Shown: piece after piece, positions 4,581 to 60,235 of the stretch
How positions within the stretch are numbered: the first letter of the stretch is position 1
Layout of the letters: the number at the start of each line of letters is the position of its first letter
Sequence record: NC_019408.1
Direction: 5' to 3' (one strand)
Length of the DNA stretch: 64,000 nucleotides
Translations under genes and position numbers: made by a program
The notes under the pieces: generated by a model
What the model was told of the DNA's origin: nothing
What the model saw: only the letters and a program-made list of their open reading frames with translations
Databases searched by the model: none

Positions 4581-4620
4581 TGTCGTGAATCTTGACGTCC
4601 CTGGATGGTCGTGGCATCCA
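4581..4620 (+). promoter_or_regulatory. 17-bp motif TGTCGTGAATCTTGACG overlapping a -35 box; promoter for tail-tip genes
   Basis: TTGACG 4592-4597, 17-nt spacer, CATCCA 4615-4620. A reverse TTAACCAT lies at 4637-4644. Confidence 0.6.
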
Positions 4621-4636
4621 GGGACTCCCTTCTCGC

Positions 4637-5305
4637 ATGGTTAACGTGATGCCGAACTACAGCTTCCACGACGTGCTGTTCCCCGAGACCATCAGCTACG
4701 GCTCGTCGGGCGGTCCGAAGTTCAAGACCACGATCTTCCAGGCCGACTCGGGCTACGAGCAACGCAACAAGGACTGGAGCGACGTGCGGCACGAGTACGA
4801 CGTCGCCCAGTCGATCCGCTCGACCGAGGACATGGAAGAACTGCGCGCCTTCTTCATGGCCCGCAACGGCCGCGCCCACGGCTTCCGCTACAAGGACTGG
4901 GGTGACTTCCGCCTGAAGAACCAGTTGATCGGCGTCGGCGACGGCGTCACCAAGACCTTCCAGATCGTCAAGACCTACACCAGCACCGGACACGACGGCA
5001 CCGACTACACCTACACTCGCAACATCCGCAAGCCCAAGTGGGACTCGATCGCCGGCGTCAAGGTCGGGCCGGTCGTCCAGGTGGCCCCGACCAACTACGA
5101 GGTCGACTATTCGACCGGCCTGATGACCTTCGTCAACGCGCCCGCCCCCGACGCCCCGGTCACCATCGGCTTGGGCGAGTTCCACGTCCCCGTCCGCTTC
5201 GACACGGACATGATGGACGTGACCCAGGAATTCTGGATGCGCGAGACGTGGCCCAACATCGCCATCGTCGAAATCCGCGACTATCAGGAGATCATCCTCC
5301 CGTGA
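4637..5305 (+). CDS. GTA-like distal tail protein (DUF2460/TIGR02217)
   Basis: FHDVLFP...ISYGSSGGP.F.T, GYEQRN..W, ARNGRAHGFRYKDWGDF and F.VPVRFDTD are characteristic. The start may be 4637 or 4649. Confidence 0.9.
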   Translation: MVNVMPNYSFHDVLFPETISYGSSGGPKFKTTIFQADSGYEQRNKDWSDVRHEYDVAQSIRSTEDMEELRAFFMARNGRAHGFRYKDWGDFRLKNQLIGVGDGVTKTFQIVKTYTSTGHDGTDYTYTRNIRKPKWDSIAGVKVGPVVQVAPTNYEVDYSTGLMTFVNAPAPDAPVTIGLGEFHVPVRFDTDMMDVTQEFWMRETWPNIAIVEIRDYQEIILP

Positions 5306-6927
5306 AATCCGTCCCGCCGCTCCTGATGGAGCACATCCAGCAGGAGGTGACGACGCTGGCGACCTGCATCACGATCGTGCGGCAGGACGGCAAGGCCTTC
5401 TTCCTGACCGACCACGACCGGCCGATCCTGTTCGAGAACCAGCACTTCGTCCCCTACGACTCCTACCAGCGCACGTCGATCCTGATGTCGTCGGAACTCG
5501 AAGTCGATACGGCCGACATCACCGCCTTCCTGACCTCCGACGGCGTCACGCGCGATGACGTGGCCTCGGGCCTGTTCGACTATGCCGCGATCAAGGTGCA
5601 GTTGCTCAACTACACCAGCCCGCAGGACGGCGCGATCCTGCTGCGCAAGGGCACCTTCGGCGAAGTGGTGATGAACCAGGACGAGACGTTCACGGCCGAA
5701 ATCCGTGGCCTGACCCAGGTCCTGACCTATCGGGTCGGCGAGTCCTATGCGCCCGAGTGCCGCGCGGACCTGGGCGATCGCCGCTGCAAGATCGGCCTGA
5801 TGCCCGAGGAATGGCAGGGCAACACCTATTACGCCACCAGCACCTGCGTGCTGGGCGAGGTCTCGGCCGCGAACTCCTTCGTCAACCTTGACGTCATCAA
5901 CTGGAGCTTCGAGTCCGGCGACCTCAACACCGTCGTCACCGCGCCGGCCGGCTGGGTGGCCTACGGCGATCCGACCAGCCGCTGGGTCTACAAGCACGAC
6001 TGGTACAACCTCTCGCGCCCGCAACTGGGCGACAAGTTCATCGCTGCGACCCGCACGTCGATCGACGACAAGCAGGAGATCGCCGGCATGTTCCAGGACA
6101 TCAGCCTCCTCAGTGCTGGCGTCTCCGAAGAGGACCTCGACTCGGGCCTCTGCCGCGTCCGCTACAAGTCGTTCGTGGCGTGTCTCAACAACCGCGCCCA
6201 GTCGCGCGAGCGCCTGACCTGCATCAAGGCCGACGGGTCGGTCGAGACGATCTGGGACACCGGCGAGAAGAAGTACCCCGAGGACCGCTGGGTCGCCGTC
6301 AACGCCGACGACGTCCTGATCCCGGCCGGCACCCGCACCCTGCGCATCGACCTGTGGTCCAAGAAGCGCAACGTCCACGAAGAGGGCGTGGCCTACGACG
6401 GCATCAAGGCCTCGATCAACCTGCCCGACGGCACGGCCGGCAACGCCGACGTCTACGGCGGGGTGATGTTCAAGTGCATCCAGGCGGGCGTCAGCGGCGA
6501 CACCCCGCCCGAATGGACCAACGAGATCGGCGCCACCTTCAACGACGGCACCGTCATCTGGCAGTGCGTGACCAACTACAAGCGCGTGGGCACGGTCGAC
6601 GCGGTCGACTCCAACAAGTCCTTCACCCCCGAAGGCATTGGCGAGCAGGGCGGCTTCTACGACGGTGGCGTGCTCTACTGGGAGACCGGCCGCAACGCCG
6701 GCCGCGCCCAGGAGATCAAGCTCTGGTCGGGCGGCGTCTTCACGCTCTTCCAGCGCACCTACTACCCGATCACCGAGGGTGACCGCTTCGTGGTCTATCC
6801 CGGCTGCGACAAGCGCCGCAGCACCTGCGGCGACAAGTTCAACAACATCCTCAACTTCCGCGCCGAGCCCGACGTGCCCGGCCAGGACATCTACTATCGC
6901 ACGCCCAACGCGCCGGAGCAGGAATGA
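5302..6927 (+). CDS. GTA-like tail hub protein (DUF2163/TIGR02218 with C-terminal BR0599 domain) carrying a large internal insertion
   Basis: GTG start overlaps the upstream TGA. TTLATC..IVRQDG...FLTDHDR, C.ADLGD.RC and PGCDKR.STC..KFNN..NFR.EP.VPG motifs are present. Confidence 0.88.
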   Translation: MKSVPPLLMEHIQQEVTTLATCITIVRQDGKAFFLTDHDRPILFENQHFVPYDSYQRTSILMSSELEVDTADITAFLTSDGVTRDDVASGLFDYAAIKVQLLNYTSPQDGAILLRKGTFGEVVMNQDETFTAEIRGLTQVLTYRVGESYAPECRADLGDRRCKIGLMPEEWQGNTYYATSTCVLGEVSAANSFVNLDVINWSFESGDLNTVVTAPAGWVAYGDPTSRWVYKHDWYNLSRPQLGDKFIAATRTSIDDKQEIAGMFQDISLLSAGVSEEDLDSGLCRVRYKSFVACLNNRAQSRERLTCIKADGSVETIWDTGEKKYPEDRWVAVNADDVLIPAGTRTLRIDLWSKKRNVHEEGVAYDGIKASINLPDGTAGNADVYGGVMFKCIQAGVSGDTPPEWTNEIGATFNDGTVIWQCVTNYKRVGTVDAVDSNKSFTPEGIGEQGGFYDGGVLYWETGRNAGRAQEIKLWSGGVFTLFQRTYYPITEGDRFVVYPGCDKRRSTCGDKFNNILNFRAEPDVPGQDIYYRTPNAPEQE

Positions 6928-7349
6928 CCCGCGACGACATCGTGACCGAAGCGCGCCGCTATGTGGCGCTCCAAACCCCCTGGCGTCACCGGGGCCGCAC
7001 CGAGCGCGGCCTCGACTGCATCGGGCTGGCCGTGATGATCTTCGAGAAATACAACCTGGAATACATGGACCAGGATGGCTACGCGCGCACGCCCGACGGC
7101 GAGCGGTTCGTCGACGTGATCAAGGCCCACATGACCCTGGCCGACCCCACCGACCTCAAGCCCGGCATGCTCGTCCTGTTCAACGACGACGCCCGGCCCT
7201 GCCATGTGGGCATCCTGGCCCAGAAGCACGGGGTCATGACCCTGATCCACGCGACCGCCGACAAGAAGCGCACGGTCGAAGAAATCTATGATCGCCGCTA
7301 CGCCGCCCGGTTCCGGATGGCGTTCGATTTCCCCGGCGTTGAGGACTAA
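6924..7349 (+). CDS. NlpC/P60 family tail-associated peptidase (TIGR02219-like)
   Basis: TPWRHRGR...GLDCIGL with catalytic Cys, and HVGI...LIHA. Confidence 0.9.
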   Translation: MTRDDIVTEARRYVALQTPWRHRGRTERGLDCIGLAVMIFEKYNLEYMDQDGYARTPDGERFVDVIKAHMTLADPTDLKPGMLVLFNDDARPCHVGILAQKHGVMTLIHATADKKRTVEEIYDRRYAARFRMAFDFPGVED

Positions 7350-7351
7350 GC

Positions 7352-10300
7352 ATGGGCGCAGCTATTGCTCTTCCGATCGTCTCGGCCATTGTCAGCACGG
7401 CGATCAGCTACATCTTCCCGGACGAAGGTCCGCGCCTGCGCGACACCAAGGTCTCGGCCTCGACCTACGGCAACGTGATCCCCGAAATCTTCGGGACCGC
7501 GCGCGTGGCCGGTAACATGATCTGGTCCAAGCCCTTCACCGAGAAGAAGAAGAAGAAGCGCGCCGGCAAGGGCGGCTCCTACTACAACCAGTACACCTAC
7601 TTCTGCGACTTCGCGATGGGCTTCTGCAAGGGTCCGGTCAAGGAGGTGCGGCGTATCTGGGCCGACGGCAAGGTGATCTATGACACCACCGGCGGCTCGG
7701 AGGTGGTCGACAACAACAAGTACCGCTTCCGCTTCTACTCCGGGGACGAAGAGCAGCTTCCCGACAGCCTCGTCTCGGAAGACAAGGGCCTGGACTACGC
7801 CCCGGCCTATCGGGGCCTTTGCTACGTCGTGTTCGACGACTTCGCCCTGGCTGACTTCGGCAACCGCATCCCGCAGATCATGGCCGAGGTCTATGCCGGC
7901 GACGAGGGCGGCACGGCGATCACCGACGTCACCTCGCTGGGCGATGACACGGAGCAGCCCGGCGGCTCCTTCCAGCTTGACCAGTGCATCATCGACACCG
8001 ATCGCGGCTACTTCTACCTCGTCGACAGCACCTCGGACCCGCGCGGCGGCGTCCTGCGGCGCTTCCTGCTGTCGAACGGCAAGGAAGACCGGCGCGAGCT
8101 TGTCCAGGTCGCCCCGACCACGCCGCCGTCGGTCTATGACAGCCCGTCCCTGACCTCCGTGCGTGGCCTGACGTCGAAGGGCGAACTGCTCTGCGTGTTC
8201 GGCGGCGTCAACAACTACATGCGGATCGAGAAGCTCGATCCCTATTCCTGGACCTCGCTGGGAACGGTGGGGCGCAGCTTCCCCTTCGAAACCAGCCCCG
8301 AACGGAGCCTGGAGTTCTCTAACGCCGACTTCAAGACTTCGCGCGACGACAAGGGCAACTACCTGACCCTGACGCTGGGTGTCTTCGGCGAGTACAACAT
8401 CTTCGATCCGTCCAGCATGACCTACATGTCCAAGGGGCACATGGCCGGCTGGAACGGCCCTGGCACGCCGATGTTCATCACCGCCCGCCAGGGCGGCTCG
8501 CCCAATGCGCGCCGCTTCTACCACGTCACCTACGACGGCGGCCCGACCCTGTCGGTGTGCAGCCTGGGCGAGACCCTCTATCATCACCCGTTGCCGCATC
8601 CTGGCGCGGCCGGCGCCACCGGCTGGTGTTTCTGGGACGAAGGCGATCCGGGCGTGGTCTTCTTCTACACCGACGGCAACCAGGATCGCTATCTGGCCAA
8701 GTGGTCGGAGACGACCGGCGCCCTGGCGTGGCAGACCCAACTCCGCAACAGCGACCCGATCTGCGGCTATCCGGTCTGGGGCATGGACGCGCGGATCAAG
8801 GACAACGAACTCCACTGGGTCTATAGGGACCACCTGTTCTCGATCAACACCTCGACGGGCAAGTGGATCGACCGCACGTTCGACCAGGACTTCTACAAGA
8901 CCAAGAACGACAAGACCGCCGATCAGGTCAATGACGGCGATCGCGGGCAGTTGCTGTCGCGTGAGGTCGCCTCCGACCACGTCATCTACGACCCGCGCCG
9001 CAACATCGTCATCGGCCTGGGGTCTCCCCAGATCACCAACGGCATCGTCCATGTCGGGGCCTACACCGGGCAGAAGACCAATGTCGGCCGCATCGTCGAG
9101 CAGTTGCTGGTCACCACCGGGCAGTTGACCTCCAACGACTACGACCTGACGCCGCTCTATGAAATCCCCGTGCGCGGCTACGGCTACGCGACCTCGACCG
9201 ACGTCAAGTCGATCATCTCCGAACTGCGCAACCTGTTCATGTTCGATCTGGTCGAAAGCGACGGCAAGCTGGTGGCGCGCGTGCGCGGCGACCAGGAGGC
9301 GGACGCCGAGGTCCCCTGGCAGCTTCTCGGCTCCCAGAGCGGCCCCAGCGACGACAAGGCCGAATACTGGAAGGAGACGCGGATGTCGGAGTCCGACCTC
9401 CCGTCCGCGATCGACCTGACCTACATGAACATCGACGACGACTACAACCCGTCGACGGCCAAGTCCAAGCGCATCTCCTCGCCGGTGGCGACCATGATGT
9501 CGCGCCAGCAGGTCAAGACCGAGTGCAACCTCGTCATGGACGCGACCGAGGCCAAGAACCGCGTCAACATCATGCTCTACACCCAGTGGGACGAGCGCAC
9601 CCAGCACAACACCGCCCTGCCCTGGGCGTTCGCGCACCTGGATGCCTCGGACCTCATCTCGGTGACCATGGAGGACGGCCGCAACTACTTCGACCGCATC
9701 GGCTCGATCGAGTTCGGCGCCGACTTCTCCTCGCGCCTGGAGACCTATGGCACCGACAGCGGCGCCTACCTGTCTGAGAAGGTCGGTGACGGCGGCGGCG
9801 CGGGCCGGCCGACCGTGGTCCACGCGCCCAAGCCGGTCGTGGGCTTCATCATGAACCTGCCGTTGCTGCGCGACACCCACGACACCGGCGCCAACTTCTC
9901 CAACTGGTACAGCGCCATCGGTCAGGGCGCGCCGGGCACCTTCTATGGCGGGACGATGTTCAAGTCCGCCAACAGCCAGGACTATGTCGATCTCTACCAG
10001 GAGACCGAGAGCGCCGAGTGGGGCACCGTCAAGGGGATCGTCCCGCCGGCCTCGCGCGGCTGGTTCGCGCTGGACTGGGAGACCAAGATCACCATCGTCC
10101 CGGCGGTCGAGTTCTTCGAACTGGAGTCGATCACCGACGACGAACTTTGGGAAGGCCAGAACGGCTTCGTGGTCGGCAACGAGGTCATGCAGTTCCGCGA
10201 CGCGGTCGAGAACGCCGACGGCACCTGGACGATCTGGAACCTGCTGCGCGGTCGGCGCGGGACGCAGTACGCCTGCGACACCCACGTCGCGGGCGAGAAG

Positions 10301-10828
10301 TTCATCTTCCTGGACGAGCGCTCGCTCGAACTCCAGGCCGAGAACCTCGACACCGCCGGGCAGAACCGCTGGTACAAGGCCGTTGGCTCGGGCATGTCGC
10401 TGTTCGAGACCGACGCCACCCAGATCAACTACCAGCCGCGCGACCTCATGCCCTACCGGCCGTCGGACATCCGCCGCGCGGTCGCGGGCGGGGACGTGAC
10501 GGTGACCTGGAAGCGCCGCACGCGCTTCACGGCCACCATGAAGGACGGCACGGGCGTGGTTCCGGTCAACGAGGGCAGCGAAGCCTACGAGGCCTATGTG
10601 CTGGCCACGGCGTTCACGGGCGACCATTCGCGCCAGGACGCGCCGGCGGCTTTCGTGCGGAAATACGACCTCACGAGCCCCACTTTCACCTACACGGCGG
10701 CCGAGCAGACGGCTGACGGATTTGACGTGAATCTTGACACTCTCCACGTCGTGATCTATCAGTTGAGTTCGGCTGTTGGTCGGGGTTTCCCCGGCGCTCG
10801 CTCGATCGAGTCCTGGCAGGACTTCTAA
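7352..10828 (+). CDS. Host-specificity / central tail protein (Phage-tail_3, GTA baseplate-like)
   Basis: STYG.VIPEIFGT.RVAGNMIW, APAYRGLCYVVF.DF.LADFGNRIP and LLRGRRGT motifs. It follows the NlpC/P60 gene as in GTA tail modules. Confidence 0.85.
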   Translation: MGAAIALPIVSAIVSTAISYIFPDEGPRLRDTKVSASTYGNVIPEIFGTARVAGNMIWSKPFTEKKKKKRAGKGGSYYNQYTYFCDFAMGFCKGPVKEVRRIWADGKVIYDTTGGSEVVDNNKYRFRFYSGDEEQLPDSLVSEDKGLDYAPAYRGLCYVVFDDFALADFGNRIPQIMAEVYAGDEGGTAITDVTSLGDDTEQPGGSFQLDQCIIDTDRGYFYLVDSTSDPRGGVLRRFLLSNGKEDRRELVQVAPTTPPSVYDSPSLTSVRGLTSKGELLCVFGGVNNYMRIEKLDPYSWTSLGTVGRSFPFETSPERSLEFSNADFKTSRDDKGNYLTLTLGVFGEYNIFDPSSMTYMSKGHMAGWNGPGTPMFITARQGGSPNARRFYHVTYDGGPTLSVCSLGETLYHHPLPHPGAAGATGWCFWDEGDPGVVFFYTDGNQDRYLAKWSETTGALAWQTQLRNSDPICGYPVWGMDARIKDNELHWVYRDHLFSINTSTGKWIDRTFDQDFYKTKNDKTADQVNDGDRGQLLSREVASDHVIYDPRRNIVIGLGSPQITNGIVHVGAYTGQKTNVGRIVEQLLVTTGQLTSNDYDLTPLYEIPVRGYGYATSTDVKSIISELRNLFMFDLVESDGKLVARVRGDQEADAEVPWQLLGSQSGPSDDKAEYWKETRMSESDLPSAIDLTYMNIDDDYNPSTAKSKRISSPVATMMSRQQVKTECNLVMDATEAKNRVNIMLYTQWDERTQHNTALPWAFAHLDASDLISVTMEDGRNYFDRIGSIEFGADFSSRLETYGTDSGAYLSEKVGDGGGAGRPTVVHAPKPVVGFIMNLPLLRDTHDTGANFSNWYSAIGQGAPGTFYGGTMFKSANSQDYVDLYQETESAEWGTVKGIVPPASRGWFALDWETKITIVPAVEFFELESITDDELWEGQNGFVVGNEVMQFRDAVENADGTWTIWNLLRGRRGTQYACDTHVAGEKFIFLDERSLELQAENLDTAGQNRWYKAVGSGMSLFETDATQINYQPRDLMPYRPSDIRRAVAGGDVTVTWKRRTRFTATMKDGTGVVPVNEGSEAYEAYVLATAFTGDHSRQDAPAAFVRKYDLTSPTFTYTAAEQTADGFDVNLDTLHVVIYQLSSAVGRGFPGARSIESWQDF
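10723..10762 (+). promoter_or_regulatory. Copy of the 17-bp motif with -35/-10 boxes embedded in coding sequence; internal promoter for the fibre genes
   Basis: TGACGTGAATCTTGACA 10723-10739, 17-nt spacer, TATCAG 10757-10762. Confidence 0.6.
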
Positions 10829-10850
10829 GCTCCCCTTCCACAATCCCATC

Positions 10851-10872
10851 GATCCCGGAGCGATCCGGGATC
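10851..10872. other. Intergenic stem-loop GATCCCGGA-GCGA-TCCGGGATC without a U-tract
   Basis: Perfect 9-bp stem with a GNRA loop. The GGA-GCRA-TCC core recurs in several terminators. Confidence 0.6.
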
Positions 10873-10899
10873 GGTCCTTGTCATAAAAGCCGTGGAACG

Positions 10900-11745
10900 A
10901 TGACCGACTACACGCCGATCCTGAAAATCCCCGAAGTCGCGCCCAACCAGAACCAAAAAGAAGACACGATCAACACCGGCTTCGCGATCCTGGAGGCCGC
11001 GCAGAACGACGACGTGCAGATCACCGTGACGTCGGGCAACTACAACGTCACCGCCGACCAGTTCACCAAGGCCTTCGTGCATCGCTACTCGGGCCACGCC
11101 GACGCCACCGTGGTCGCGGTCATCCCCACCTCCGCCCGCTGGTTTGCTCTGGCCAACGAGGGCGGGTTCGCCATGGGGCTGAAGGTCTTCGGGCAGGTTC
11201 CCGTCGTGACCATCCAGCCGGGCAAGATCGTGCTCTTCCAGTCGGACGGCACCACCCTGCGCGCGGTTTCCGAAGGCGTCAGCCGCATCTTCGATCTCTC
11301 CGACGTCGACGGCTCCGACACGCCCTCGAACGGACAGACCCTGGTGTGGAATTCCACGACCAGCCGGTTCGAGCCGGCCGACCTGCCGGCCGATGCCGAC
11401 TTCTGGACGAACGGCACGACGGGCAACAACGGCGTCGTCCTGCGTAAGCTCTTCCTGCGCCCGGTGCGCTTCCTGGCCGACTTCCTGGGCTCGATCGCCA
11501 AGGCCGGCGTCGCCGCCACCGGCACCGCCGTCTTCACGGTCAAGAAGACCACGGGCGTGACGACCACCACCGTCGGCACCATCACCTTCACCGGGACCAC
11601 CGCCACCTTCTCGACCGACGTCGGGGCCGGCTCGGTCACCGTCAATTTCGGGGCCGGCGACATCATGACCATCACCGGTCCCGCCACCTCCAACGCCACC
11701 CTCGCTGACATCGTCGCTTCCCTCAAGGGCGTCATCCTGCAATGA
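10900..11745 (+). CDS. Tail fibre/adaptor protein, DUF2793-like N-terminus
   Basis: MTDYTPILKIPEVAPNQNQKEDTIN N-terminus, paralogous to the next gene. Confidence 0.75.
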   Translation: MTDYTPILKIPEVAPNQNQKEDTINTGFAILEAAQNDDVQITVTSGNYNVTADQFTKAFVHRYSGHADATVVAVIPTSARWFALANEGGFAMGLKVFGQVPVVTIQPGKIVLFQSDGTTLRAVSEGVSRIFDLSDVDGSDTPSNGQTLVWNSTTSRFEPADLPADADFWTNGTTGNNGVVLRKLFLRPVRFLADFLGSIAKAGVAATGTAVFTVKKTTGVTTTTVGTITFTGTTATFSTDVGAGSVTVNFGAGDIMTITGPATSNATLADIVASLKGVILQ

Positions 11746-14700
11746 CCGACTATACGCCGATCCTGAAGCTGCCTGAGGTCGCGCCGAACCAGAACCAGAA
11801 GGAAGACACGATCAACACCGCGCTCGCCATCCTGGAGAGCGCGATGAACAACGTGAAGCCCTATACCCTGACGGGCGCGGGGCCGTTCGCCCTGACCGAC
11901 GACGACTTCACCCGCTACTTCCTGCACCGCTTCTCGGGCCAGACCGCCGCCTACGAGATCACCGTCCCCGCCGGCCAGCCGCGCTGGTTCGCCGTGGAGA
12001 ACGGCGGCAGCTTCGCCATCACCGTGCGTTGCGCCGGCGTCTCGGGCGGCCTGCCGTTCGAGGTTCCCTCCGGCAAGATCGGCCTCGTGGTCTCCGATGG
12101 CGCGGACCTGCGCACCGTCGTGCCGCAGGCGGGCATGGGTCTGCTCCAGGACCTTTCCGACGTCTCGGGCGTGCCCACCGACAAGCAGGTCCTGCGCTAT
12201 GATGCGCCGTCGAACCTGTGGAAGCCCTCGACCTTCCTGCTCTCGTTCGGCGAACTAACCGACACGCCCAACAACTACTTCGGCGCCAACGGCAAGATCG
12301 TCGCGGTCAACGCTGCCGGCGATGGCCTGGAGTTCGTCTCCTCGGCCGCCAACGTCAACTCCTTCGTCGACCTGGACGACACGCCCAGCAGCTACTCGGG
12401 CGCGGCCGGCCTGACCGTCAAGGTCTCGCCCGGCGGCACGGGCCTGATCTTCGCCGCGCCGACCTTCCTGGAAGCCTCCGACACGCCCAACACCTATGGC
12501 GGGCAGGCCAAGAAGTTCCCGCGCGTCAAGGCCGACATGTCGGGACTGGAGTTCGACAGCGTCCGCCTGACGGACCTGTCGGACGGTCCGGGGTCCTACG
12601 CCGGCGCGGCCGGCATGTTCGTGCGCGTCAAGAACGACGGCACGGGGTTTGAGTTCAACACCGGCTCGGGCGGCCCCGACAACTTCCTGGACCTGACCGA
12701 CACGCCTGACGCGTACACGGGTCAGGGCAGCAAGGCCGTGCGCGTCAAGTCCGACGTCAGTGGCCTGGAGTTCTACACCCCCACGCTCCTGGGCCTGGGC
12801 GACACGCCGGCCAACTACACGGGCGCGGCCAACAAGGTGCTGCGCGTCAATAGCTCGGGCAATGCCGTGGTGTTCAGCACCCTGGCCTTTGGCGACCTGT
12901 CGAACGTCCCGCTGCCGGAGGCCAACAAGTGGCTGCGCTGGAGCCCGACGGGCACGGCGATCGTCAACGACACGCCCACCTTCCTGGGCCTGCTCGACAC
13001 GCCCAATGCCTACGCGGGCAACGAGGGCAAGTACGTCTACGTCAAGGGCGATGGCTCGGGCCTGGGCTTTGCGGCCTCCTCGGTCAACCTGTCGTTCCTG
13101 GAACTGAACGACGCGATCGACACCTCCTACGATAGCAAGACCGACATGGTGCCGATCGTCACGATCGTCACCGGCACGCCCGTGCTTAAGCTGGGCTACT
13201 ATGCCTTCAGCAAGCTGGCGGGCATCAGCCTGTCCTCGCCCACCGAAGGGCAAATCCTCGGCTACGACGCCGACCTGGGCCTGTGGACCAACATCGACGC
13301 TCCCGAGGGCGGCGGTGGCGGCTCGATCGGCGTGCCCTCCTACGGCGAACACGCCTACTGGCGCCTGCTGCTGCACACCACCGACGGCAGCACCAGCCAG
13401 TACGGCATCCAGGAAATCCAGTTCAAGCACTCCAAGACCGGCGCGGACTTGGCCAATGGCGGCACGCCCTCGGCCAGCAGCGACCAGTTCGGCACGGTCG
13501 CCGGAGCGTTCGACAACGTCATCTCCGGCGCGTGGTTCTCCAACACGCCCAACGACGGCGAGTGGATCGCCTACCACTTCACCACGCCGGCCGACGTCCG
13601 CTATGTGACCCTCCAGGGCTCGCAGTCCCAGCCCGATACCTCGCCGCGCTCGTTCTCGGTCCAGTACAGCGACGACGGCGTCGCCTACACCACCGCCTGG
13701 GAAGTCACCGGGCAGAACGGCTGGGCGCCGGGCCAGACCCGCGAGTTCCACGCCCCGATCGACCTCTTCTTCACCGATCTGGCCGACGCCCCGCCCAGCT
13801 ATATCGGTCAGGCGCTGAAGGTCCTGCGGGTCAACGCCGGCGAGACCGCGCTCGAACTCTTCACCCTGCCCTCGGTCCCGACCAAGCTCGACGACCTGAC
13901 CGACGTTCAGGTCACCGGCACGCCGACCGACGGGCAGGTCCTGGCCTGGGACGACGCGACCGGGGTCTTCAAACCCACCTCGGTGCCGGGCATCACCCCG
14001 ACGGCGTTCACGGACCTGACCGACGCGCCCACCTCCTATGCGGGCGAGGGCGGCAACGCCGTGCGCGTCAAGATGACTGAGGACGGTCTGGAATTCTACA
14101 CCCCCGGCACGGGTGGTGGCGGCGGGGGTGGCAGCTATCGCGGGGCCTGGGCCTCGGGTTCCGAGCAGGTCATTCTCAACTTCGAGAACGGCAGTCTCAA
14201 TCCGGCCTTCACCTATGATGCGGCCGGCTTCAACGTCGTCATCCAGCCGGACACGGTCTCGGGCACCACCCTGGCCCTGAAGTTCCGTCCGATCGGCAAT
14301 GGAGCGACCTGCTATTGCGACCTGCCGGTCGAGGACGTGGTTGGGATCGCCAACTTCAAGGTCCGCTACAAGGTCTCCTCCGAAGGTCCGGACTTCTTCC
14401 GGGTCATCCAGGACGGTACGACCACGCTGCTGACCGACAGCGGCAACACCGGGCTGTACGAGGAAGGGTCTTTCCCGGTCACCGGCGACCACACCCTGCG
14501 GTTCCAGTACAGCAAGGACGGCTCGCTGGCGGTCGGCGACGACACCGTCTACATCTCGCAGATCACCTACTTCAAGACGCTGACCAACCCCTACGTCTAC
14601 GGGGACACGATCACCTATGCCGGGTCCTATTGGCTCTGCCGCGTCGGTGGAACCTCCGAAGAGCCGGGCGTTGGCGACGACTGGATCAAGCTGCCTGATA

Positions 14701-16481
14701 CCCTGGCGCAACTGGATGACGTCGACCTGACCTCGTCGCCGCCCTCGAACGGTCAAGCCCTGGTCTTTGATGGCGCGACCAACAAGTTCAAGCCGGGAAC
14801 CGTGGCCGGCGGCTCGGGTGGTGGTAACAAGTACAACATCGGCGTGACGCCGCGCACGCGTCTGCACCGCGCGGCTATCCAGTCGATCCCGACTTCGACC
14901 TGGACGGCGGTCCAGTGGGACACCGAGGCCGAAGACGCCGCCAACGCCTTCACCAGCGGTGCCAACACGCGGGTCACCATTCCGGCGGGCGTCAAGGCCG
15001 CGCGCGTGACGGCCTATGCCAACTGGGTGACGCCGGTCACCACCTCGATCGTGGGCTTGGCCCTGCGTCGCAATGGCGTCGAGATCGGCTCTACCGGCGG
15101 CTCGCCCGTCGCGGCCTCGCGCGCGGGCCTCTACCAGTCGCATCTCAATTTCACGTCTGAGTGGTTCCCGGTCACGCAAGGGGACTACTACGAGTTGTTC
15201 GTCTATCACGACTCGGGCTCCAACCGGGACCTGAACGGTCCGGTCACCAACTTCGGCGAGAACACCTACCTCCAGTTCGAGTGGGATGAAGGCATCTCGC
15301 CCTCGGCGGTCGAGGCCGGAGACTTCCACGGCCCCCACCAGGGCTGGCGGATGCTGACCATCGACAGCCAGACGGGAACCTATGCCACGTTTGGGGAACT
15401 GAAGTTCTTCGACCGTAGCGGCGTCCAGATCGCCACCACCGGCGGGAAGCTCTTCGACACCTACTCCCACCCCTCTTACCCTGTCCAGCAGGCCTTCGAC
15501 GGCAACAACACGACCTACTGGTCCTCGCTCCAACAGACCTCGACCGGTCAGCTTGCCGGCCCCGGCTACATCTTCGCCGCGCCCGTCGATGTCGGCTCGA
15601 TCAAGCTGACCTCGACGTCGACCGACTTCAACAGCACCAACTCGCCCAAGAACTTCGCGATCCAGTACACCGATGACGGTGGCGCGTCGTGGTTCACCTA
15701 CGTCACCTTCAGCAACCAGACCGGCTGGGGCGACCGGGAGGAGCGCACGTTCGTCCTGCCGACGAGCGGCATCGCCCGCGTCGGGGGCGCCCGCGCGCTC
15801 GACGAACTCAAGGACGTCACGATCGGCACGCCCAAGAACGGCGACCTGCTGACCTATGACGCGACGACCTCGACCTGGAAGCAGAAGTCCCGCTGGGGCT
15901 ATGCGCCGCCCGTGGCGGCCGATTTCCCCACGGCCGTGGGCACCGTGCCCCTGACCCTGACCTATGACGACGAGGTCGGGCTGATGATCGACTGCGGGGC
16001 CAGCGCCTCAGGGGACGTGCAGCGCGCCGTCCTCAAGGCGCTGCCGACGGGGGACTGGAACCTGACGGTGAAGATCACCGACCATCTGGCGCCGGTCTAC
16101 TACAACGCCGTCGGGGTCGTGATGCGCGAGTCCTCGACGGGTAAGATCGTGCTGTTCGGGTGCGAGATCGCCGGATCGAGCTTCTCGGTTCCGATGCGTC
16201 AGGTCCGCTACTCGCGTCTGCCGGGCCTCTCGGGCTTCACGGCCAACGACTACGCCCGGCCCTCGCCGTCGCTGCCCCAGTGGTATCGCCTCTCCCTGGT
16301 GGGCAGCACCCTCAAGGCCGAGGTGTCGGCCGACGGCAAGTTCTGGCGCACCGTGGTCTCGCAGGCGGTGACCACCGGGTTCACGACCAAGCCCGACCAG
16401 ATCGGGCTCGGCTGCTCGCTCAACTACACCGACACCCAGAGCGCGATGCTCTCCGTGTCCTACTGGAGCCAGTCCTGGTAG
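11742..16481 (+). CDS. Long tail fibre / receptor-binding protein with DUF2793-like N-terminus, ~30-aa repeats and two discoidin/F5-8-like lectin modules
   Basis: Repeats of F.DL.DTP..Y.G....VRV..DG.GLEF at ~12250-13110 and ~13770-14100. Two W.....GIQEIQF / F.ELKFF...AFD...W modules at ~13330-13760 and ~15330-15760. Confidence 0.8.
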   Translation: MTDYTPILKLPEVAPNQNQKEDTINTALAILESAMNNVKPYTLTGAGPFALTDDDFTRYFLHRFSGQTAAYEITVPAGQPRWFAVENGGSFAITVRCAGVSGGLPFEVPSGKIGLVVSDGADLRTVVPQAGMGLLQDLSDVSGVPTDKQVLRYDAPSNLWKPSTFLLSFGELTDTPNNYFGANGKIVAVNAAGDGLEFVSSAANVNSFVDLDDTPSSYSGAAGLTVKVSPGGTGLIFAAPTFLEASDTPNTYGGQAKKFPRVKADMSGLEFDSVRLTDLSDGPGSYAGAAGMFVRVKNDGTGFEFNTGSGGPDNFLDLTDTPDAYTGQGSKAVRVKSDVSGLEFYTPTLLGLGDTPANYTGAANKVLRVNSSGNAVVFSTLAFGDLSNVPLPEANKWLRWSPTGTAIVNDTPTFLGLLDTPNAYAGNEGKYVYVKGDGSGLGFAASSVNLSFLELNDAIDTSYDSKTDMVPIVTIVTGTPVLKLGYYAFSKLAGISLSSPTEGQILGYDADLGLWTNIDAPEGGGGGSIGVPSYGEHAYWRLLLHTTDGSTSQYGIQEIQFKHSKTGADLANGGTPSASSDQFGTVAGAFDNVISGAWFSNTPNDGEWIAYHFTTPADVRYVTLQGSQSQPDTSPRSFSVQYSDDGVAYTTAWEVTGQNGWAPGQTREFHAPIDLFFTDLADAPPSYIGQALKVLRVNAGETALELFTLPSVPTKLDDLTDVQVTGTPTDGQVLAWDDATGVFKPTSVPGITPTAFTDLTDAPTSYAGEGGNAVRVKMTEDGLEFYTPGTGGGGGGGSYRGAWASGSEQVILNFENGSLNPAFTYDAAGFNVVIQPDTVSGTTLALKFRPIGNGATCYCDLPVEDVVGIANFKVRYKVSSEGPDFFRVIQDGTTTLLTDSGNTGLYEEGSFPVTGDHTLRFQYSKDGSLAVGDDTVYISQITYFKTLTNPYVYGDTITYAGSYWLCRVGGTSEEPGVGDDWIKLPDTLAQLDDVDLTSSPPSNGQALVFDGATNKFKPGTVAGGSGGGNKYNIGVTPRTRLHRAAIQSIPTSTWTAVQWDTEAEDAANAFTSGANTRVTIPAGVKAARVTAYANWVTPVTTSIVGLALRRNGVEIGSTGGSPVAASRAGLYQSHLNFTSEWFPVTQGDYYELFVYHDSGSNRDLNGPVTNFGENTYLQFEWDEGISPSAVEAGDFHGPHQGWRMLTIDSQTGTYATFGELKFFDRSGVQIATTGGKLFDTYSHPSYPVQQAFDGNNTTYWSSLQQTSTGQLAGPGYIFAAPVDVGSIKLTSTSTDFNSTNSPKNFAIQYTDDGGASWFTYVTFSNQTGWGDREERTFVLPTSGIARVGGARALDELKDVTIGTPKNGDLLTYDATTSTWKQKSRWGYAPPVAADFPTAVGTVPLTLTYDDEVGLMIDCGASASGDVQRAVLKALPTGDWNLTVKITDHLAPVYYNAVGVVMRESSTGKIVLFGCEIAGSSFSVPMRQVRYSRLPGLSGFTANDYARPSPSLPQWYRLSLVGSTLKAEVSADGKFWRTVVSQAVTTGFTTKPDQIGLGCSLNYTDTQSAMLSVSYWSQSW

Positions 16482-16504
16482 GCCCTATACGCTTCGCCGT
16501 ATAT

Positions 16505-16538
16505 CCCGGATTTATACGCGAAAGCGCATAAATCCGGG
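16505..16538. terminator. Stem-loop after the tail fibre gene
   Basis: CCCGGATTTAT / ATAAATCCGGG form an 11-bp inverted repeat. Confidence 0.5.
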
Positions 16539-16558
16539 CTATGCGTTTTCGGGCATAA

Positions 16559-16598
16559 TGTCGTGAATCTTGACATCGGCACAAATCCAGGCCATGGT
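16559..16598 (+). promoter_or_regulatory. 17-bp motif plus promoter of the lysis cassette
   Basis: TGTCGTGAATCTTGACA 16559-16575, 17-nt spacer, CATGGT 16593-16598. Confidence 0.7.
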
Positions 16599-16634
16599 CA
16601 AGACCTGATTTTCAGCACTCCCGGAATTCCCCAC

Positions 16635-17273
16635 ATGCGTGTCTCTGACGCCGGCCTGAAGCTTATCCAGGCCTGGGAAGGTCTCGGCGACGGTAACCCC
16701 GCCACCGTGGACCTCGAACCCTACATCTGCCCGGCCAAGGTTTGGACCGTCGGCTGGGGGCACGCCCTGAAGACGCCGACCGGTCAGATCATCGACGTCG
16801 ACGTCTTCGGCGCGGCCAGGGCCAAGGCCTTGGCCGCCGAATCCATGCAGCGCAAGTTCGGCAAGGGCGCCATCACCAAGGCCCAGGCCGTGGACCTCGT
16901 GCGCGAGGACGTGACCTACTTCGAGCGGCAGGTCGAGAAGCTGGTGGCGGGCAATGCGGCCCAGGCCGAGTTCGACGCCCTGGTGTCGTTCGCCTTCAAC
17001 TGCGGCGTCGCCAACCTCCAGTCCTCGACCCTGCTGCGGATGCACAACGCCGGCAAGCGCAAGGTCGGCGACGTCTCGCTGTCGGACCTCTGCCAGAAGA
17101 GCAAGCTCTCCACGCCGATCGACAACGTCGCCGTGGCCTTCGTCCGCTGGAACAAGTTCAACGGCAAGTGGGCGCTGGGGCTGTTCCGCCGGCGCCTGTC
17201 CGAGGCCCTGGTCTACGGCGGCCACAATCCCGACGAGGCGGTCAAAGCCGCCCAAGCCTTCAAGGGCTGCTGA
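16635..17273 (+). CDS. Endolysin, GH24 phage lysozyme
   Basis: GLKLIQAWEG (catalytic Glu), YICPAKVWTVGWGH and FDALVSFAFNCG...L..STLLR. The ATG at 16635 is preferred over the track start, which lies inside the promoter. Confidence 0.9.
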   Translation: MRVSDAGLKLIQAWEGLGDGNPATVDLEPYICPAKVWTVGWGHALKTPTGQIIDVDVFGAARAKALAAESMQRKFGKGAITKAQAVDLVREDVTYFERQVEKLVAGNAAQAEFDALVSFAFNCGVANLQSSTLLRMHNAGKRKVGDVSLSDLCQKSKLSTPIDNVAVAFVRWNKFNGKWALGLFRRRLSEALVYGGHNPDEAVKAAQAFKGC

Positions 17274-17274
17274 C

Positions 17275-17763
17275 ATGGGCCTCTTCGCGATCATCGCCCT
17301 GGCCGTGAAGTTCCTAATGAACCCGGCCGTCATGGGCGTGCTGTTCATCACCATCGCCGCCCTGACGGGCCTGTGGTTCCTGGGCGGCCCGGCGCTGTTC
17401 TGGAAGGTCCTGCGCGACGCGCGTCTCTGGCTGCTGGTCGCCGTGGCGGCCGTGGTCTTCGGCTATGCCCATCTCCAGGCCAAGCTCGACAAGACCGAGC
17501 AGCGCCTGGAGCAGGTCGAGCAGCAGAAGCAGGCCCACGACGACGGCCAGGAGGTCGTCAAGAACAACATCAAAAAGCAGGTCAAGCGCGCCCAGCAGGG
17601 GGCCAAGTACCAAGAGGTTATCCACAATGCCCCGACTGGCGAAAAGCTCGACGCCCTCCTCGACGAGTTCGCGCGCGATCAAGGCGTTCCTGATCCCCGC
17701 CCTTCTGCTGCTCAGCCTGTCCCTGACGGCGTGTCAAAGTCTCCCGGTCGGATTCTCCCCTGA
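17275..17763 (+). CDS. Inner-membrane spanin (Rz-like)
   Basis: N-terminal hydrophobic segments followed by a coiled coil. It follows the endolysin and overlaps a lipoprotein gene. Confidence 0.75.
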   Translation: MGLFAIIALAVKFLMNPAVMGVLFITIAALTGLWFLGGPALFWKVLRDARLWLLVAVAAVVFGYAHLQAKLDKTEQRLEQVEQQKQAHDDGQEVVKNNIKKQVKRAQQGAKYQEVIHNAPTGEKLDALLDEFARDQGVPDPRPSAAQPVPDGVSKSPGRILP

Positions 17764-18489: not shown

Positions 18490-18494
18490 GGACC

Positions 18495-47150: not shown

Positions 47151-47200
47151 GGGTCCGCACGTGGTTAACGCGCGGCAATGTCGCCCATGACGACGTCACA

Positions 47201-47245
47201 TGTCAAGATTCATGACTTGACCCAAGGCGTTAACCATGGCACGGT
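47201..47245. promoter_or_regulatory. Divergent regulatory region with the 17-bp motif and TTAACCAT
   Basis: Minus-strand AGTCATGAATCTTGACA at 47217-47201. Plus-strand TTGACC at 47217. TTAACCAT at 47230-47237. Confidence 0.55.
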
Positions 47246-53133: not shown

Positions 53134-53224
53134 TATCAACTCCAGAGGAGAGTGGTTAGGTGGATGTCGACGATCCTTCTATCCAGGGCATCCGGTTCTG
53201 TCAACACACTCGCTCCGGCTTTTT

Positions 53225-53264
53225 GGTCGTGAATCTTGACGTTCTCGCACGGGTCAGGCACAAT
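53225..53264 (+). promoter_or_regulatory. 17-bp motif plus promoter with a leaderless start
   Basis: GGTCGTGAATCTTGACG, 17-nt spacer, CACAAT. ATG lies 6 nt later. Confidence 0.65.
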
Positions 53265-53270
53265 TTTCTC

Positions 53271-53519
53271 ATGTGGTCAATCCGCAACATCACGACCGAA
53301 GCCTCCCACTCGATTCGCACCTGCACCGCCAAGGACTACCCGTGGCCTGAGCGGGGGTCGGAGGGCTGCATTTGTCGCGACCCTGGCGCGCGCCGTGACC
53401 GGGATTTCATGCTGCTGATCGACCGCCATGGCGAGATTCAATGGTACGCGAGGACGACATGCCCGATCCACGGCCCGAAGATCACGACGGTGGACGTCGA
53501 AACAAAATCCACGACCTGA
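53271..53519 (+). CDS. Small Cys-containing hypothetical protein, probably leaderless
   Basis: ATG at the predicted +1; CIC and CPIHG. Confidence 0.55.
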   Translation: MWSIRNITTEASHSIRTCTAKDYPWPERGSEGCICRDPGARRDRDFMLLIDRHGEIQWYARTTCPIHGPKITTVDVETKSTT

Positions 53520-55625: not shown

Positions 55626-56014
55626 TGGCGTCTCCTGTCGAAGAGCGCCTGGACCCGACGATCCTGGCCCCGCTCATCTACCGCCACTTCTACAACGGTC
55701 CCGTCGGCGGCGCGGCCTTCCGCCTCGCGCGGATCATCCGCAACCACGCCATGGGCCTGCCGATCCTGTCGTTCGCCGAGGTGCTCGACGAGTACCTGAA
55801 CGCCAAGCTCGGACTCAATGACAGCGCCGACCCCGAGATCAGGGCGGAGAACGAGCGCACCCTCAAGACCGCCCGCGCGGCGTTCTGGAAGGCGCTCAAC
55901 GGCATAGGCGATCCCGAGCACGTCGACGGACTGGTCCGCTATGCCCAGGCCAAGAGCCTGAGCGAGTGCATCGCCGAGACCCTTGAAAAACGTCGTCCGC
56001 AACAACTGTCATGA
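55625..56014 (+). CDS. Hypothetical protein
   Basis: Translationally coupled ATG. Confidence 0.65.
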   Translation: MASPVEERLDPTILAPLIYRHFYNGPVGGAAFRLARIIRNHAMGLPILSFAEVLDEYLNAKLGLNDSADPEIRAENERTLKTARAAFWKALNGIGDPEHVDGLVRYAQAKSLSECIAETLEKRRPQQLS

Positions 56015-56047
56015 ATCTTGACACCTGTCGGGAAAGGGGGCTAGATG
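56007..56047 (+). promoter_or_regulatory. 17-bp motif plus primase promoter
   Basis: TGTCATGAATCTTGACA 56007-56023, followed by GCTAGAT near 56040-56046. Confidence 0.6.
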
Positions 56048-59738: not shown

Positions 59739-59765
59739 CGGGGGTGAGTGCTCCAGGACTACGAG

Positions 59766-59796
59766 AAAGGCCCCAGGAGCGATCCTGGGGCCTTTT
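59766..59796. terminator. Bidirectional terminator
   Basis: AAAGGCCCCAGGA-GCGA-TCCTGGGGCCTTTT. Confidence 0.85.
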
Positions 59797-59807
59797 GAGT
59801 TGTAGCC

Positions 59808-60197
59808 TTAGAGCCAGACGACCCGAGGCGGTTTGCCCCGCTCACGCACGATCCTGACGTCGCCGCTCGCGACGAGCTTGGCGAACATCTTGTCGAGCGA
59901 GGAGGTCTTGGTCTTGCCCTTCTGGGCGGCCTGGGCGCGCCGGCGCTGGCGGCGGTTCATCTGCCCTTCATCGGCGACGGCGTAATTGGTGCTGTCGGGC
60001 TCGGAGCCCCGGCCGTAGCTCATCTCGAACGAGGCCGACTGGAGTTCCTGGCGGGTGAGCTTGCCGCTGGTGATCGCTTGGTCCAGGACGGCGATCGCAT
60101 CGGGCGGGTACTTGTCGCGGACGGCCTCCAGATAGGCCGCCTTCTCCTCGGGGGAGAGGGCCTCGGCCGGGTCGAGAGTGGAGGGGTGAGGCGTCAT
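59808..60197 (-). CDS. Hypothetical protein
   Basis: GGAG precedes the ATG; ends at the terminator. Confidence 0.7.
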   Translation of the reverse strand: MTPHPSTLDPAEALSPEEKAAYLEAVRDKYPPDAIAVLDQAITSGKLTRQELQSASFEMSYGRGSEPDSTNYAVADEGQMNRRQRRRAQAAQKGKTKTSSLDKMFAKLVASGDVRIVRERGKPPRVVWL

Positions 60198-60218
60198 GAA
60201 AATCTCCAGAGGCGGGAA

Positions 60219-60235
60219 TGTCGCCCTTCATGACA
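60219..60235. promoter_or_regulatory. Degenerate copy of the 17-bp motif in a divergent intergenic region
   Basis: TGTCGCCCTTCATGACA (TGTC-N9-GACA). Confidence 0.45.

Follow-up and report, generated by a model that had tools for sequence, protein, structure and literature searches.

A recurrent 17-bp near-palindrome apparently defines a putative promoter class ahead of genes for tail, lysis, and DNA replication in Caulobacter phage CcrRogue

A 17-bp near-palindrome, centered in most copies on GANTC, recurs ahead of genes in a 64,000-nucleotide stretch of the genome of Caulobacter phage CcrRogue (JX100814 bases 62001-126000, here called the window), raising the questions of what this element is and which protein reads it. 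Searching the window for the 17-mer TGTCGTGAATCTTGACA with up to 3 mismatches returned 13 matches, including 4 exact copies, against a chance expectation of 0.10 ± 0.30, and none of 100 dinucleotide-preserving shuffles reached 13. Thirteen of the 14 sites listed by a first-pass annotation of this DNA are these matches, and the remaining one, at 60219, which differs at 5 positions and lacks both GANTC and a TTGAC box, is not a full member of the set. The sites are as follows.

4581-4597, plus strand: promoter-type 17-mer with the right half TTGACG, upstream of gp095 (4637); 16 of 17 bases identical at the orthologous place in phage phiCbK.
10723-10739, plus strand: promoter-type 17-mer ahead of gp099 (10900), located inside the 3' end of gp098; 17 of 17 bases identical in phiCbK.
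16559-16575, plus strand: exact 17-mer ahead of gp101 (16635), which encodes the endolysin; 17 of 17 bases identical in phiCbK.
18662-18678, plus strand: promoter-type 17-mer with the center GATCC and no GANTC; its -10 box, TATGGT, is the best E. coli-like one of the set.
25046-25062, minus strand: promoter-type 17-mer ahead of gp109, which encodes ribonucleotide reductase alpha.
25979-26025, minus strand: gp112 promoter, consisting of TTGACC (26020-26025), 2 nt, a 17-mer (26001-26017), 5 nt, and a second palindrome (25979-25995).
32208-32224, minus strand: exact 17-mer ahead of gp118, which encodes an exonuclease.
36218-36235, minus strand: near-perfect palindrome TGTCGTGAATCACGTCA, with 7 of 8 arm positions paired, in the promoter of gp121 (cytosine methyltransferase gene).
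39429-39467, minus strand: exact 17-mer (39429-39445) and second site (39451-39467) upstream of the methyltransferase-like gene gp124.
41512-41528, plus strand: exact 17-mer after tRNA-Met, upstream of gp126.
47179-47217, minus strand: promoter-type 17-mer (47201-47217) and second site (47179-47195) upstream of the helicase gene gp129.
53225-53241, plus strand: promoter-type 17-mer, back to back with the divergent early-type rIIA promoter.
56007-56023, plus strand: promoter-type 17-mer upstream of gp144.
60219-60235, no strand assigned: weak relative retaining only TGTC-N9-GACA, between the divergent genes gp145 and gp146, without -35 overlap.

The right half of the motif had been described as a -35 hexamer followed 17 nt away by a -10-like box in most copies, and this is true for 11 of the 13 sites. 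The exceptions are those for which placement in the spacer had been proposed, correctly: at 26001, the 17-mer is preceded at a distance of 2 nt by a TTGACC box, and at 36218, a TTGACG box lies at the end of the palindrome. All 11 promoter-type sites of the window are directed at the next annotated gene or, for 18662, at an unannotated stretch of about 300 nt ending at a terminator (18973-19008). The whole CcrRogue genome contains 22 promoter-type copies, and every copy with an annotated downstream gene (21 of 21) is co-directional with it, 39 to 217 nt ahead of the start codon. All 22 sites contain TTGAC, and 17 of them the complete TTGACA; positions 2, 4, 7, 8, and 11 to 16 never vary among the promoter-type copies of the genome. 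The -10 boxes are weak and varied, TA being the first letters in only about half of them. We infer from these sequence features that the sites are active promoters, and the 17-mer appears to mark a real, apparently undescribed promoter class ahead of tail, lysis, and DNA-replication genes.

The copies are restricted to record bases 20-118 kb and 206-208 kb, where they occur only in structural, tRNA, tail, lysis, nucleotide/replication, and packaging modules. This distribution bears out the earlier proposal of a genome-wide promoter set covering tail, lysis, replication, and RNA-linked units. Scanning the CcrRogue genome revealed no copy in the terminal repeats or in the 126-206 kb blocks, which are composed of small, presumably early genes. 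These blocks contain a second promoter family (about 22 copies) that has the TTGACA core in common with the 17-mer class but a different upstream element and better -10 boxes. CcrRogue would have at least two promoter families, including the 17-mer class. Promoters of the early type also occur in the window.

53199-53207, minus strand: early-type promoter GTGTTGACA followed, after 17 nt, by TAGAAG; serves rIIA and has no 17-mer.
60256-60264, plus strand: early-type promoter GTGTTGACA; serves the gp146-148 operon, in contrast to the 17-mer class.

In phiCbK, replication genes have been reported to be expressed early and structural and lysis genes to be middle or late. Since one operator precedes both groups, it cannot set timing alone.

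Comparison with related phages revealed that the 17-mers are better conserved than their surroundings. Between CcrRogue and phiCbK, 168 of 170 bases (98.8%) are identical in the 17-mers, versus 75.7% in the upstream 60 nt and 84.3% in the downstream 60 nt; upstream of the site at 16559, only 30 of 60 positions match. CcrColossus, which infects the same host, retains the layout at orthologous promoters (ribonucleotide reductase alpha, the gp112-type pair, cytosine methyltransferase, and tail genes) with the half-site TGCCAGGA in place of the CcrRogue half-site TGTCGTGA. The ortholog of the 25046 site (L153 14516) has an identical right half and the left half TGCCAGGAATC, whereas that of the 36218 site (L153 2462) reads TGACAGGAATCCTGGCA, and the change thus affects both arms. 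In the stand-alone palindromes of CcrColossus, both arms are likewise altered together relative to CcrRogue. The two-site layout of the gp112 promoter is also found in CcrColossus (L153 13013 and 13037, 24 bp apart) with the half-sites of that phage. Even for the weak site at 60219, phiCbK retains the outer arms, and CcrColossus carries a site of the CcrColossus type there. Further half-site variants were detected in two metagenomic relatives and in CcrSC/CcrBL9. Against this pattern, CcrColossus also carries one palindrome of the CcrRogue type. The exact 17-mer was not found in the Caulobacter genome searched in a species-representative collection. Thus, same-host relatives keep the architecture with other half-sites, both arms changing together, suggesting that the reader is not a host factor.

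These comparisons bear on the idea that no separate regulator exists, the left half being read by RNA polymerase through the alpha C-terminal domain or sigma, or the cassette having spread by duplication and being homogenized by gene conversion. The left half spans about -46 to -36, a region contacted by alpha subunits in other bacteria; every lineage has an A(A/T)TC-like tetranucleotide directly ahead of TTGAC, and CcrColossus encodes a protein annotated as alpha-CTD-like. However, the half-sites vary among phages of the same host and yet are constant in each single genome, and CcrRogue and phiCbK have the same ones despite their diverging flanks. Stand-alone palindromes, secondary sites devoid of a TTGAC box, and spacer sites are not accounted for either, and extended similarity around the copies is absent, which speaks against recent duplication. 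We consider this explanation highly improbable.

The central GANTC led the first-pass annotation to propose reading by a GcrA-like factor, possibly gated by methylation. In such a reading, GANTC would be the functional core, and CcrM-type methylation, read by host GcrA or a phage GcrA-like protein acting as a sigma-70 cofactor, would gate the promoters. GAATC is present on the motif strand in twelve copies, as previously listed, the copy at 18662 carrying GATCC, so that GANTC occurs in 12 of the 13 window sites; it occurs in 20 of the 22 promoter-type sites genome-wide and ends directly at the -35 hexamer. Like promoters controlled by GcrA and CcrM (PMC4647560), those of CcrRogue are of the sigma-70 type with a GANTC near the core, and the phage encodes a GcrA-family protein (PF07750, E = 8e-21). 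GANTC is also scarce in the window (68 copies observed, whereas dinucleotide shuffles predict 337 ± 16), and the motif accounts for 12 of these copies. However, the 305 copies of the complete genome are no scarcer than words of the same composition (range, 231-558). Methylation of GANTC is independent of the middle base, yet 19 of the 22 sites have A there. The 7-mer surrounding the GANTC is TGAATCT (AGATTCA on the opposite strand) rather than the GcrA-favored YGAKTCK, and AGATTCA ranked last of 32 contexts for binding of host GcrA (Haakonsen et al. 2015, PMC4647560). Sites of the GcrA regulon are found near -20 or at +2 to +30 (same reference), whereas the GANTC of the 17-mer is located just upstream of the -35 box, at about -41 to -37 as deduced from the hexamer positions. 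No GcrA-like gene was detected at E ≤ 1e-3 in CcrColossus, CcrPW, or Bertelyvirus phages, and the symmetric element nevertheless persists in such relatives, including those of the same host, many of the sites lacking GANTC (present in 4 of 9 sites in CcrColossus, 1 of 4 in CcrSC, and 2 of 4 and 1 of 3 in the metagenomic relatives). Finally, secondary sites at ±22 bp retain the outer arms and not the GANTC center, and GcrA would leave the two-fold symmetry, the change in both arms, and the spacer sites unexplained. These observations argue against the GcrA/CcrM reading, which is quite unlikely. GANTC is near-universal only in lineages with a GcrA-like gene, which would be compatible with a lineage-specific GcrA add-on. 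Because the reader is most likely encoded by the phage, the likeness to the methylation system of the host is probably incidental. As for the methyltransferase-like gp124, PHROG 799 was its sole match, searches of Pfam, NCBIfam, and PDB returning none.

The two-fold symmetry of the motif, which had been taken as the signature of a dimeric regulator, is real. Operators occupy three placements relative to the core promoter, centered near -38, about -26, and about -19, and all three cover core elements (the -35 box, the spacer, and the -10 box or start). In the gp112 promoter, two sites 22 bp apart (center to center) span the spacer, the -10 box, and the start region. In the gp121 promoter, the far end of the palindrome completes the TTGACG box of the minus strand, which is followed after 17 nt by TAACCA; the site thus fills the spacer. 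Second sites were detected exactly 22 bp from the primary site in 5 to 7 of 23 promoters; five sites match the ideal palindrome at 11 or more of 16 positions at exactly this distance, for a background of 5.4e-4 per position. The second site upstream of gp124 (13 of 16 positions) is 22 bp further upstream of the 17-mer, whereas that of gp129 is 22 bp downstream, over the spacer and the -10 box, and the latter pair is also present in phiCbK. Positions 6 to 11, approximately, are fixed in primary and not in secondary sites, a sequence pattern that hints at a second signal adjoining the -35 box.

We propose, as the probable explanation, that a host-type -35 hexamer has been built into a two-fold operator read by a phage-encoded dimer, most likely a repressor, for which gp106 is the best candidate. 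According to this model, the sigma-70-family hexamer (TTGACA) would be part of the promoter-proximal arm of a 17-bp operator made of the half-site TGTCGTGA in two-fold symmetry about one central base. The reader would be a dimeric DNA-binding protein encoded by the phage. Once bound, it would compete with sigma, since the proximal arm and sigma region 4 require the same bases, and it would act as a repressor or as a dosage or timing governor; sites exactly 22 bp apart may be bound cooperatively. The bound protein would most likely shut the promoter, because the arm and sigma region 4 share bases and other copies lie over the spacer or the -10 box.

Alternatively, the sites could form an activator-dependent middle/late class in which host RNA polymerase is recruited or remodeled by a phage dimer bound beside the -35 box or over it, as in class II activation or sigma appropriation. 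The 17-mer family is indeed found only in modules expressed after the earliest genes and is missing from the early-type blocks. Compared with the early-type family, it has weaker -10 boxes, which would also fit promoters needing help, and the register is the same, with the right half as the -35 box and the position of the site relative to the -10 box fixed, in 22 of about 26 sites. However, most copies have a perfect TTGACA, which is unusual for activator-dependent promoters; these would be expected to have a poor or missing -35 box replaced by the activator site, in contrast to the TTGAC present in 22 of 22 sites of the 17-mer class. As the proximal arm spans the whole hexamer, the dimer and sigma region 4 would compete for one groove. 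Some copies are located in the spacer (gp112, gp121, and the CcrColossus endolysin promoter) or over the -10 box or start, and placement differs between orthologous promoters, the endolysin operator being in the spacer in CcrColossus and on the -35 box in CcrRogue. Moreover, replication genes that bear the element are reported to be early. Activation thus appears unlikely.

Returning to a phage-encoded dimer, two products of the window are candidate readers.

19030-19821, minus strand: gp106, an XRE-type helix-turn-helix protein with a LexA/CI-type C-terminal domain; leading candidate reader.
60914-61330, plus strand: gp147, a small HTH_3 protein and core gene of the subfamily; alternative candidate reader.

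The earlier choice of gp106 as a candidate was reasonable. The protein matches Pfam HTH_3 and PHROG 4 ("transcriptional repressor"), and its AlphaFold model (pLDDT 79) has as its best PDB matches a lambda-186 hybrid repressor, 186 CI, LexA, and lambda CI (Foldseek, 7jvt, 2fjr, 3k2z, 1jhe, and 3bdn; E, 9e-8 to 4e-4); a phmmer search of the PDB with gp106 gave no match. In model comparison, the N-terminal domain resembles P22 c2 and 434. The gene, located at the end of the replication module, is a core gene of the subfamily, present in 49 of 49 related phage records. The helix-turn-helix is 94% identical between the CcrRogue and phiCbK types (6 differences in about 95 aligned residues, counted manually), two lineages that have the operator in common. 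The orthologs of CcrColossus and two metagenomic lineages have one common helix-3 core, yet their half-sites differ. No canonical 17-mer was found upstream of gp106. As gp147 equals gp106 both in phyletic distribution and in conservation of the recognition helix, the data do not single out gp106, which we retain as the leading candidate for the predicted operator-binding protein. We infer that the reader is a phage-encoded repressor and tentatively equate it with gp106.

XRE regulators common to Caulobacter and phiCbK (RtrA, RtrB, CdxA, CdxB, and the phage protein TgrL, which is an abundant early protein) are mainly repressors (McLaughlin et al. 2023, PMC10688885). Like these proteins, gp106 is an XRE-family helix-turn-helix protein, from the same phage group. 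TgrL itself does not appear to be the reader, as its published weight matrix scored the phiCbK 17-mers at background (-1.9 to 6.5; random-window mean, 1.9; 95th percentile, 7.7). Unlike TgrL, gp106 is a larger, distinct protein with a CI-like C-terminal domain.

The CcrRogue operators resemble those of the lambda CI, 186 CI, and LexA systems in their two-fold symmetry over 17 bp, their overlap with core promoter elements, and their tandem arrangement about two helical turns apart, and gp106 is modeled with the helix-turn-helix and LexA/CI-like C-terminal domain. They differ from them in that an operator arm doubles as the -35 hexamer. Another parallel is provided by p4 of phage phi29, a regulator of the early/late switch of a virulent phage that binds inverted repeats at promoters. 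The proposed CcrRogue dimer would similarly alter the lytic temporal program from symmetric sites overlapping the -35 box of host-polymerase promoters. In contrast to p4, to which no sequence or fold relation was found, it would serve more than 20 sites in a 224-kb genome, and the direction of control is deduced indirectly.

Unlike the phages with CI systems, CcrRogue is virulent with no known lysogeny, so that its more than 20 promoters would form a temporal or dosage regulon spanning the genome rather than an immunity switch. There is also a slim chance that, in the CcrRogue and phiCbK lineages, the operator center was purposely turned into a CcrM site for methylation-sensitive seating of the phage regulator, or of the GcrA-like protein, beside the -35 box. 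If so, seating of the regulator would differ between incoming or fully methylated phage DNA and freshly replicated DNA left unmethylated in a cell without CcrM, and more than 20 promoters would gain a replication-coupled timer tied to the cell cycle of the host.

The sequence comes from the Caulobacter phage CcrRogue (JX100814.1; 223,720 bp), a phiCbK-like jumbo siphophage, of which the window represents bases 62001 to 126000. In order, the window covers the tape-measure gene, the tail genes, the lysis cassette, a nucleotide-metabolism and replication module encoded on the minus strand, and a small region of tRNAs, and it extends past rIIA/rIIB. Scanning the window for the near-palindromic 17-mer TGTCGTGAATCTTGACA with up to 3 mismatches returned 13 matches, versus 0.10 in shuffled sequences. 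All of the copies located by the first-pass annotation were recovered except that at 60219, which has 5 mismatches, lacks both GANTC and the TTGAC box, and has no more than the outer TGTC...GACA in common with the others. GAATC is present in 12 copies, as had been claimed. The right half of the element also proved to be a TTGAC(A/G/T) box in 11 of the 13 sites, followed 17 nt on by a weak and varied -10-like hexamer, and the next gene lies in the direction of all 11 of these promoter-type sites. At 26001 and 36218 the 17-mer is within the promoter spacer, as proposed, with a -35 box adjoining or overlapping its end. A scan for E. coli-type promoters (bases 1 to 20000) recovered 18662 as the sole 17-mer site and is therefore unsuited to the -10 element of this host.

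The remainder of the public CcrRogue record was scanned piece by piece, and the claim of a genome-wide set of promoters was supported, with 22 promoter-type copies in the whole record. An annotated gene follows 21 of the 22, always co-directional and with its start codon 39 to 217 nt away. Positions 2, 4, 7, 8, and 11 to 16 of the 17-mer are invariant in the 22 copies. The units include the portal, capsid-region, tail-tube, tail, endolysin, ribonucleotide reductase, exonuclease, methyltransferase, helicase, and pre-terminase genes as well as tRNA-adjacent genes. This genome scan found no copies in the terminal repeats, the left arm up to 19 kb, or the small-gene blocks at 126 to 206 kb. Among 185,579 genomes, the exact 17-mer had 55 scattered matches, about the number that we estimate for chance, with none in any named Caulobacter genome; the species-representative collection includes a Caulobacter genome, which likewise lacks it. 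Several short contigs of a metagenome-assembled genome labeled Opitutaceae (JBDSSU01; L165, L168, L190, and L199) carry exact 17-mers and were probably mis-binned, their true source being a phiCbK-like phage.

A second promoter family comprises about 22 copies, in which GTGTTGACA, a spacing of 17 nt, and a TAGAAG-like box precede a conserved leader that ends in CGACGACAAC, with TTGGCG a few bases upstream. Its members fill the small-gene blocks at 128 to 204 kb of JX100814 (L005 and L006) and also drive rIIA. Two lie in the window:

53199-53207, minus strand, GTGTTGACA-family (early-type) promoter of rIIA
60256-60264, plus strand, GTGTTGACA-family (early-type) promoter of the gp146 operon

The tgrL ortholog is located behind one copy and tgrL is, by experiment, an early gene of phiCbK; the GTGTTGACA family is therefore probably an early promoter class. 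The two families have a host-type core in common and differ in the 11 bases upstream of the -35 box. For gp137 (53160 to 53519), the annotated start at 53160 precedes the probable promoter of this gene (53225) and falls on the divergent rIIA promoter; this start codon is therefore probably mis-assigned.

Comparison of CcrRogue with phiCbK at ten orthologous sites revealed 168 of 170 identical bases in the 17-mers, versus identities of 75.7% and 84.3% in the 60 nt upstream and downstream, respectively. Near-identity of the 17-mers between diverging flanks argues that selection acts on the element as a unit, including left-half bases outside the known polymerase contacts. CcrColossus, which infects the same host, has orthologous promoters with the same layout and a different half-site: the reductase promoter carries TGCCAGGAATCTTGACT versus TGTCGTGAATCTTGACT in CcrRogue, and the palindrome of the cytosine methyltransferase gene is TGACAGGAATCCTGGCA versus TGACGTGATTCACGACA on the same strand. 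The paired sites behind a TTGACC box are kept in CcrColossus, with arms of the CcrColossus type, and further half-site variants occur in CcrSC/CcrBL9 and in two metagenomic relatives. The joint change of both arms makes a dimer the most likely reader of the 17-mer. Positions fixed within each genome vary between phages of one host, which makes reading by a host protein unlikely. A lone CcrRogue-type palindrome, TGTCGTGATTCACGGCA, is present in CcrColossus (L153, 19646 to 19662) in a hairpin upstream of the gp106 ortholog, unlike the TGCCAGGA-type arms used by the promoters of that phage. CcrColossus gp133 (L153, 25989 to 26843), next to the endolysin gene, is annotated as an RNA polymerase alpha C-terminal-domain-like protein and could bear on the handling of upstream promoter elements in these phages.

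According to the other reading offered by the first-pass annotation, methylation of the central GANTC by CcrM and its recognition by a GcrA-like factor might gate the 17-mer promoters. This reading is weak. The 7-mer around this GANTC is the worst-bound context for GcrA (Haakonsen et al.), and the position of the site is unlike that of GcrA sites. The middle base is nearly always A, a base to which methylation is indifferent. GANTC is near-universal only in lineages with a GcrA-like gene, as gating would have it, although the correlation amounts to one phylogenetic contrast. Such a gene is absent from CcrColossus, CcrPW, and the Bertelyvirus phages, and many sites in phages without it carry no GANTC, as do the secondary sites located 22 bp off. 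The window contains 68 GANTC sites versus 337 expected from dinucleotide shuffles, a fivefold deficit, but the argument from avoidance is weakened, since across the genome an equal rarity is seen for other words of the same composition. The GANTC itself is present because the inner GA of each half-site is joined to the other through one base. The specificity of gp124, which is methyltransferase-like, was sought in Pfam, NCBIfam, and PDB, none of which contained a match. The connection to the GcrA/CcrM epigenetic system, though tempting, is weak, and the analysis corrects it.

Reading by a phage-encoded dimer would raise the question of whether control is positive or negative. The -35 hexamer forms the promoter-proximal arm of most copies, and the two bases by which this arm differs from the ideal palindrome are exactly those that TTGACA requires. 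Since the arm is that hexamer, sigma and the regulator would read the same bases, could not do so simultaneously, and would be mutually exclusive. The gp112 and gp121 copies place the operator over the spacer, the -10 element, and the start site, and the endolysin promoter has its operator in the spacer in CcrColossus versus on the -35 box in CcrRogue. A second palindrome is found exactly 22 bp off, over the -10 element or upstream, at 5 to 7 of 23 promoters (background for such a match, 5.4e-4 per position). Repressors generally have sites that are free in position over core elements and tandem sites that are phased, and the 17-mer operators are alike in both respects. By this analogy, we propose with moderate confidence that the bound reader represses. 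Two observations speak against a simple repressor: the -10 boxes of the 17-mer family are weaker than those of the early-type family, and the same operator precedes both the replication genes, reported as early in phiCbK, and the structural and lysis genes, reported as middle or late.

The XRE protein put forward as a candidate reader gained support from its domain and its model:

19030-19821, minus strand, gp106, XRE-type helix-turn-helix domain, PHROG 4 (a large phage repressor family)

The closest structures to its AlphaFold model (pLDDT 79) are a lambda-186 hybrid repressor, 186 CI, LexA, and lambda CI, and the N-terminal domain resembles P22 c2 and 434. gp106 belongs to the core genes of the subfamily (49 records), and its DNA-binding region is almost unchanged between the CcrRogue and phiCbK types, which have the operator in common. 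The small helix-turn-helix protein gp147 equals gp106 in phyletic spread and conservation; its helix is identical in CcrRogue and phiCbK, and it is neither favored nor eliminated. Three lineages of gp106 orthologs have one helix-3 core despite different half-sites, and a simple covariation code between helix 3 and half-site was thus rejected. It is therefore only by architecture that gp106 is the best candidate. TgrL, an early XRE repressor already known from phiCbK, was discarded as the reader, its published weight matrix scoring at background on the sites. Autoregulation of gp106 via a canonical 17-mer was also discarded: the conserved upstream promoter lacks one, and the leader has only a TGTC-N12-GACA repeat, which is found in four CcrRogue/phiCbK-type phages (CcrRogue, CcrBL10, phiCbK, and Karma). 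The promoter-like element upstream of gp106 (19822 to 20007, minus strand) comprises a TTGA-type box, 17 nt, and a TA-rich box and is common to orthologs of distant lineages (L121, L151, L152, L154, and L156).

Other signals occur near these promoters. The 8-mer TTAACCAT has five copies in the window (4637, 25017, 36206, 39414, and 47230) versus 0.17 expected; none is more than 50 bp from a 17-mer, and the spacer or the -10 zone is a frequent location. The same proximity is seen in CcrColossus and CcrSC. We take TTAACCAT to resemble the CtrA site in its short form, a likeness that would tie the promoters to a host cell-cycle regulator. The CcrRogue terminal repeat (L003, 1795 to 1946) contains six closely spaced TTGACG boxes with similar flanks, in a region for which others have reported CtrA-dependent promoters. 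A permuted, two-piece tmRNA (40546 to 40864, plus strand; Rfam score, 88 bits versus a threshold of 47) is absent from the GenBank annotation and was not called by ARAGORN. The 18662 promoter leads into about 300 nt (18706 to 19010, plus strand) with no credible reading frame and a strong terminator at the end. This stretch folds better than its shuffles (z = -4.2), matched no Rfam family beyond terminator-like sub-threshold hits, and is a candidate non-coding RNA convergent with gp106.

A description of the motif was not found in the genome paper (Gill et al. 2012), the CtrA paper (Mascolo et al. 2022), the XRE/RNA-seq paper (McLaughlin et al. 2023), the Lacusarx paper, or literature retrieved with related terms. 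Phage operator/promoter regulons are already known as a kind, and this motif is new among them. Two traits are unusual for such a regulon: the -35 box is at the same time an operator arm, and the phage is virulent. Phages of the phiCbK type are standard tools in Caulobacter cell-cycle research, and the map provides a concrete and testable promoter grammar, so far undescribed, for their transcription program: two families of about 22 copies each, with the same host-type core and different upstream elements, split the genome into blocks. It also offers a candidate regulator, a CI-like protein kept across the whole subfamily, and the drift of the half-site between lineages on one host constitutes a natural series for the co-evolution of regulator and operator.
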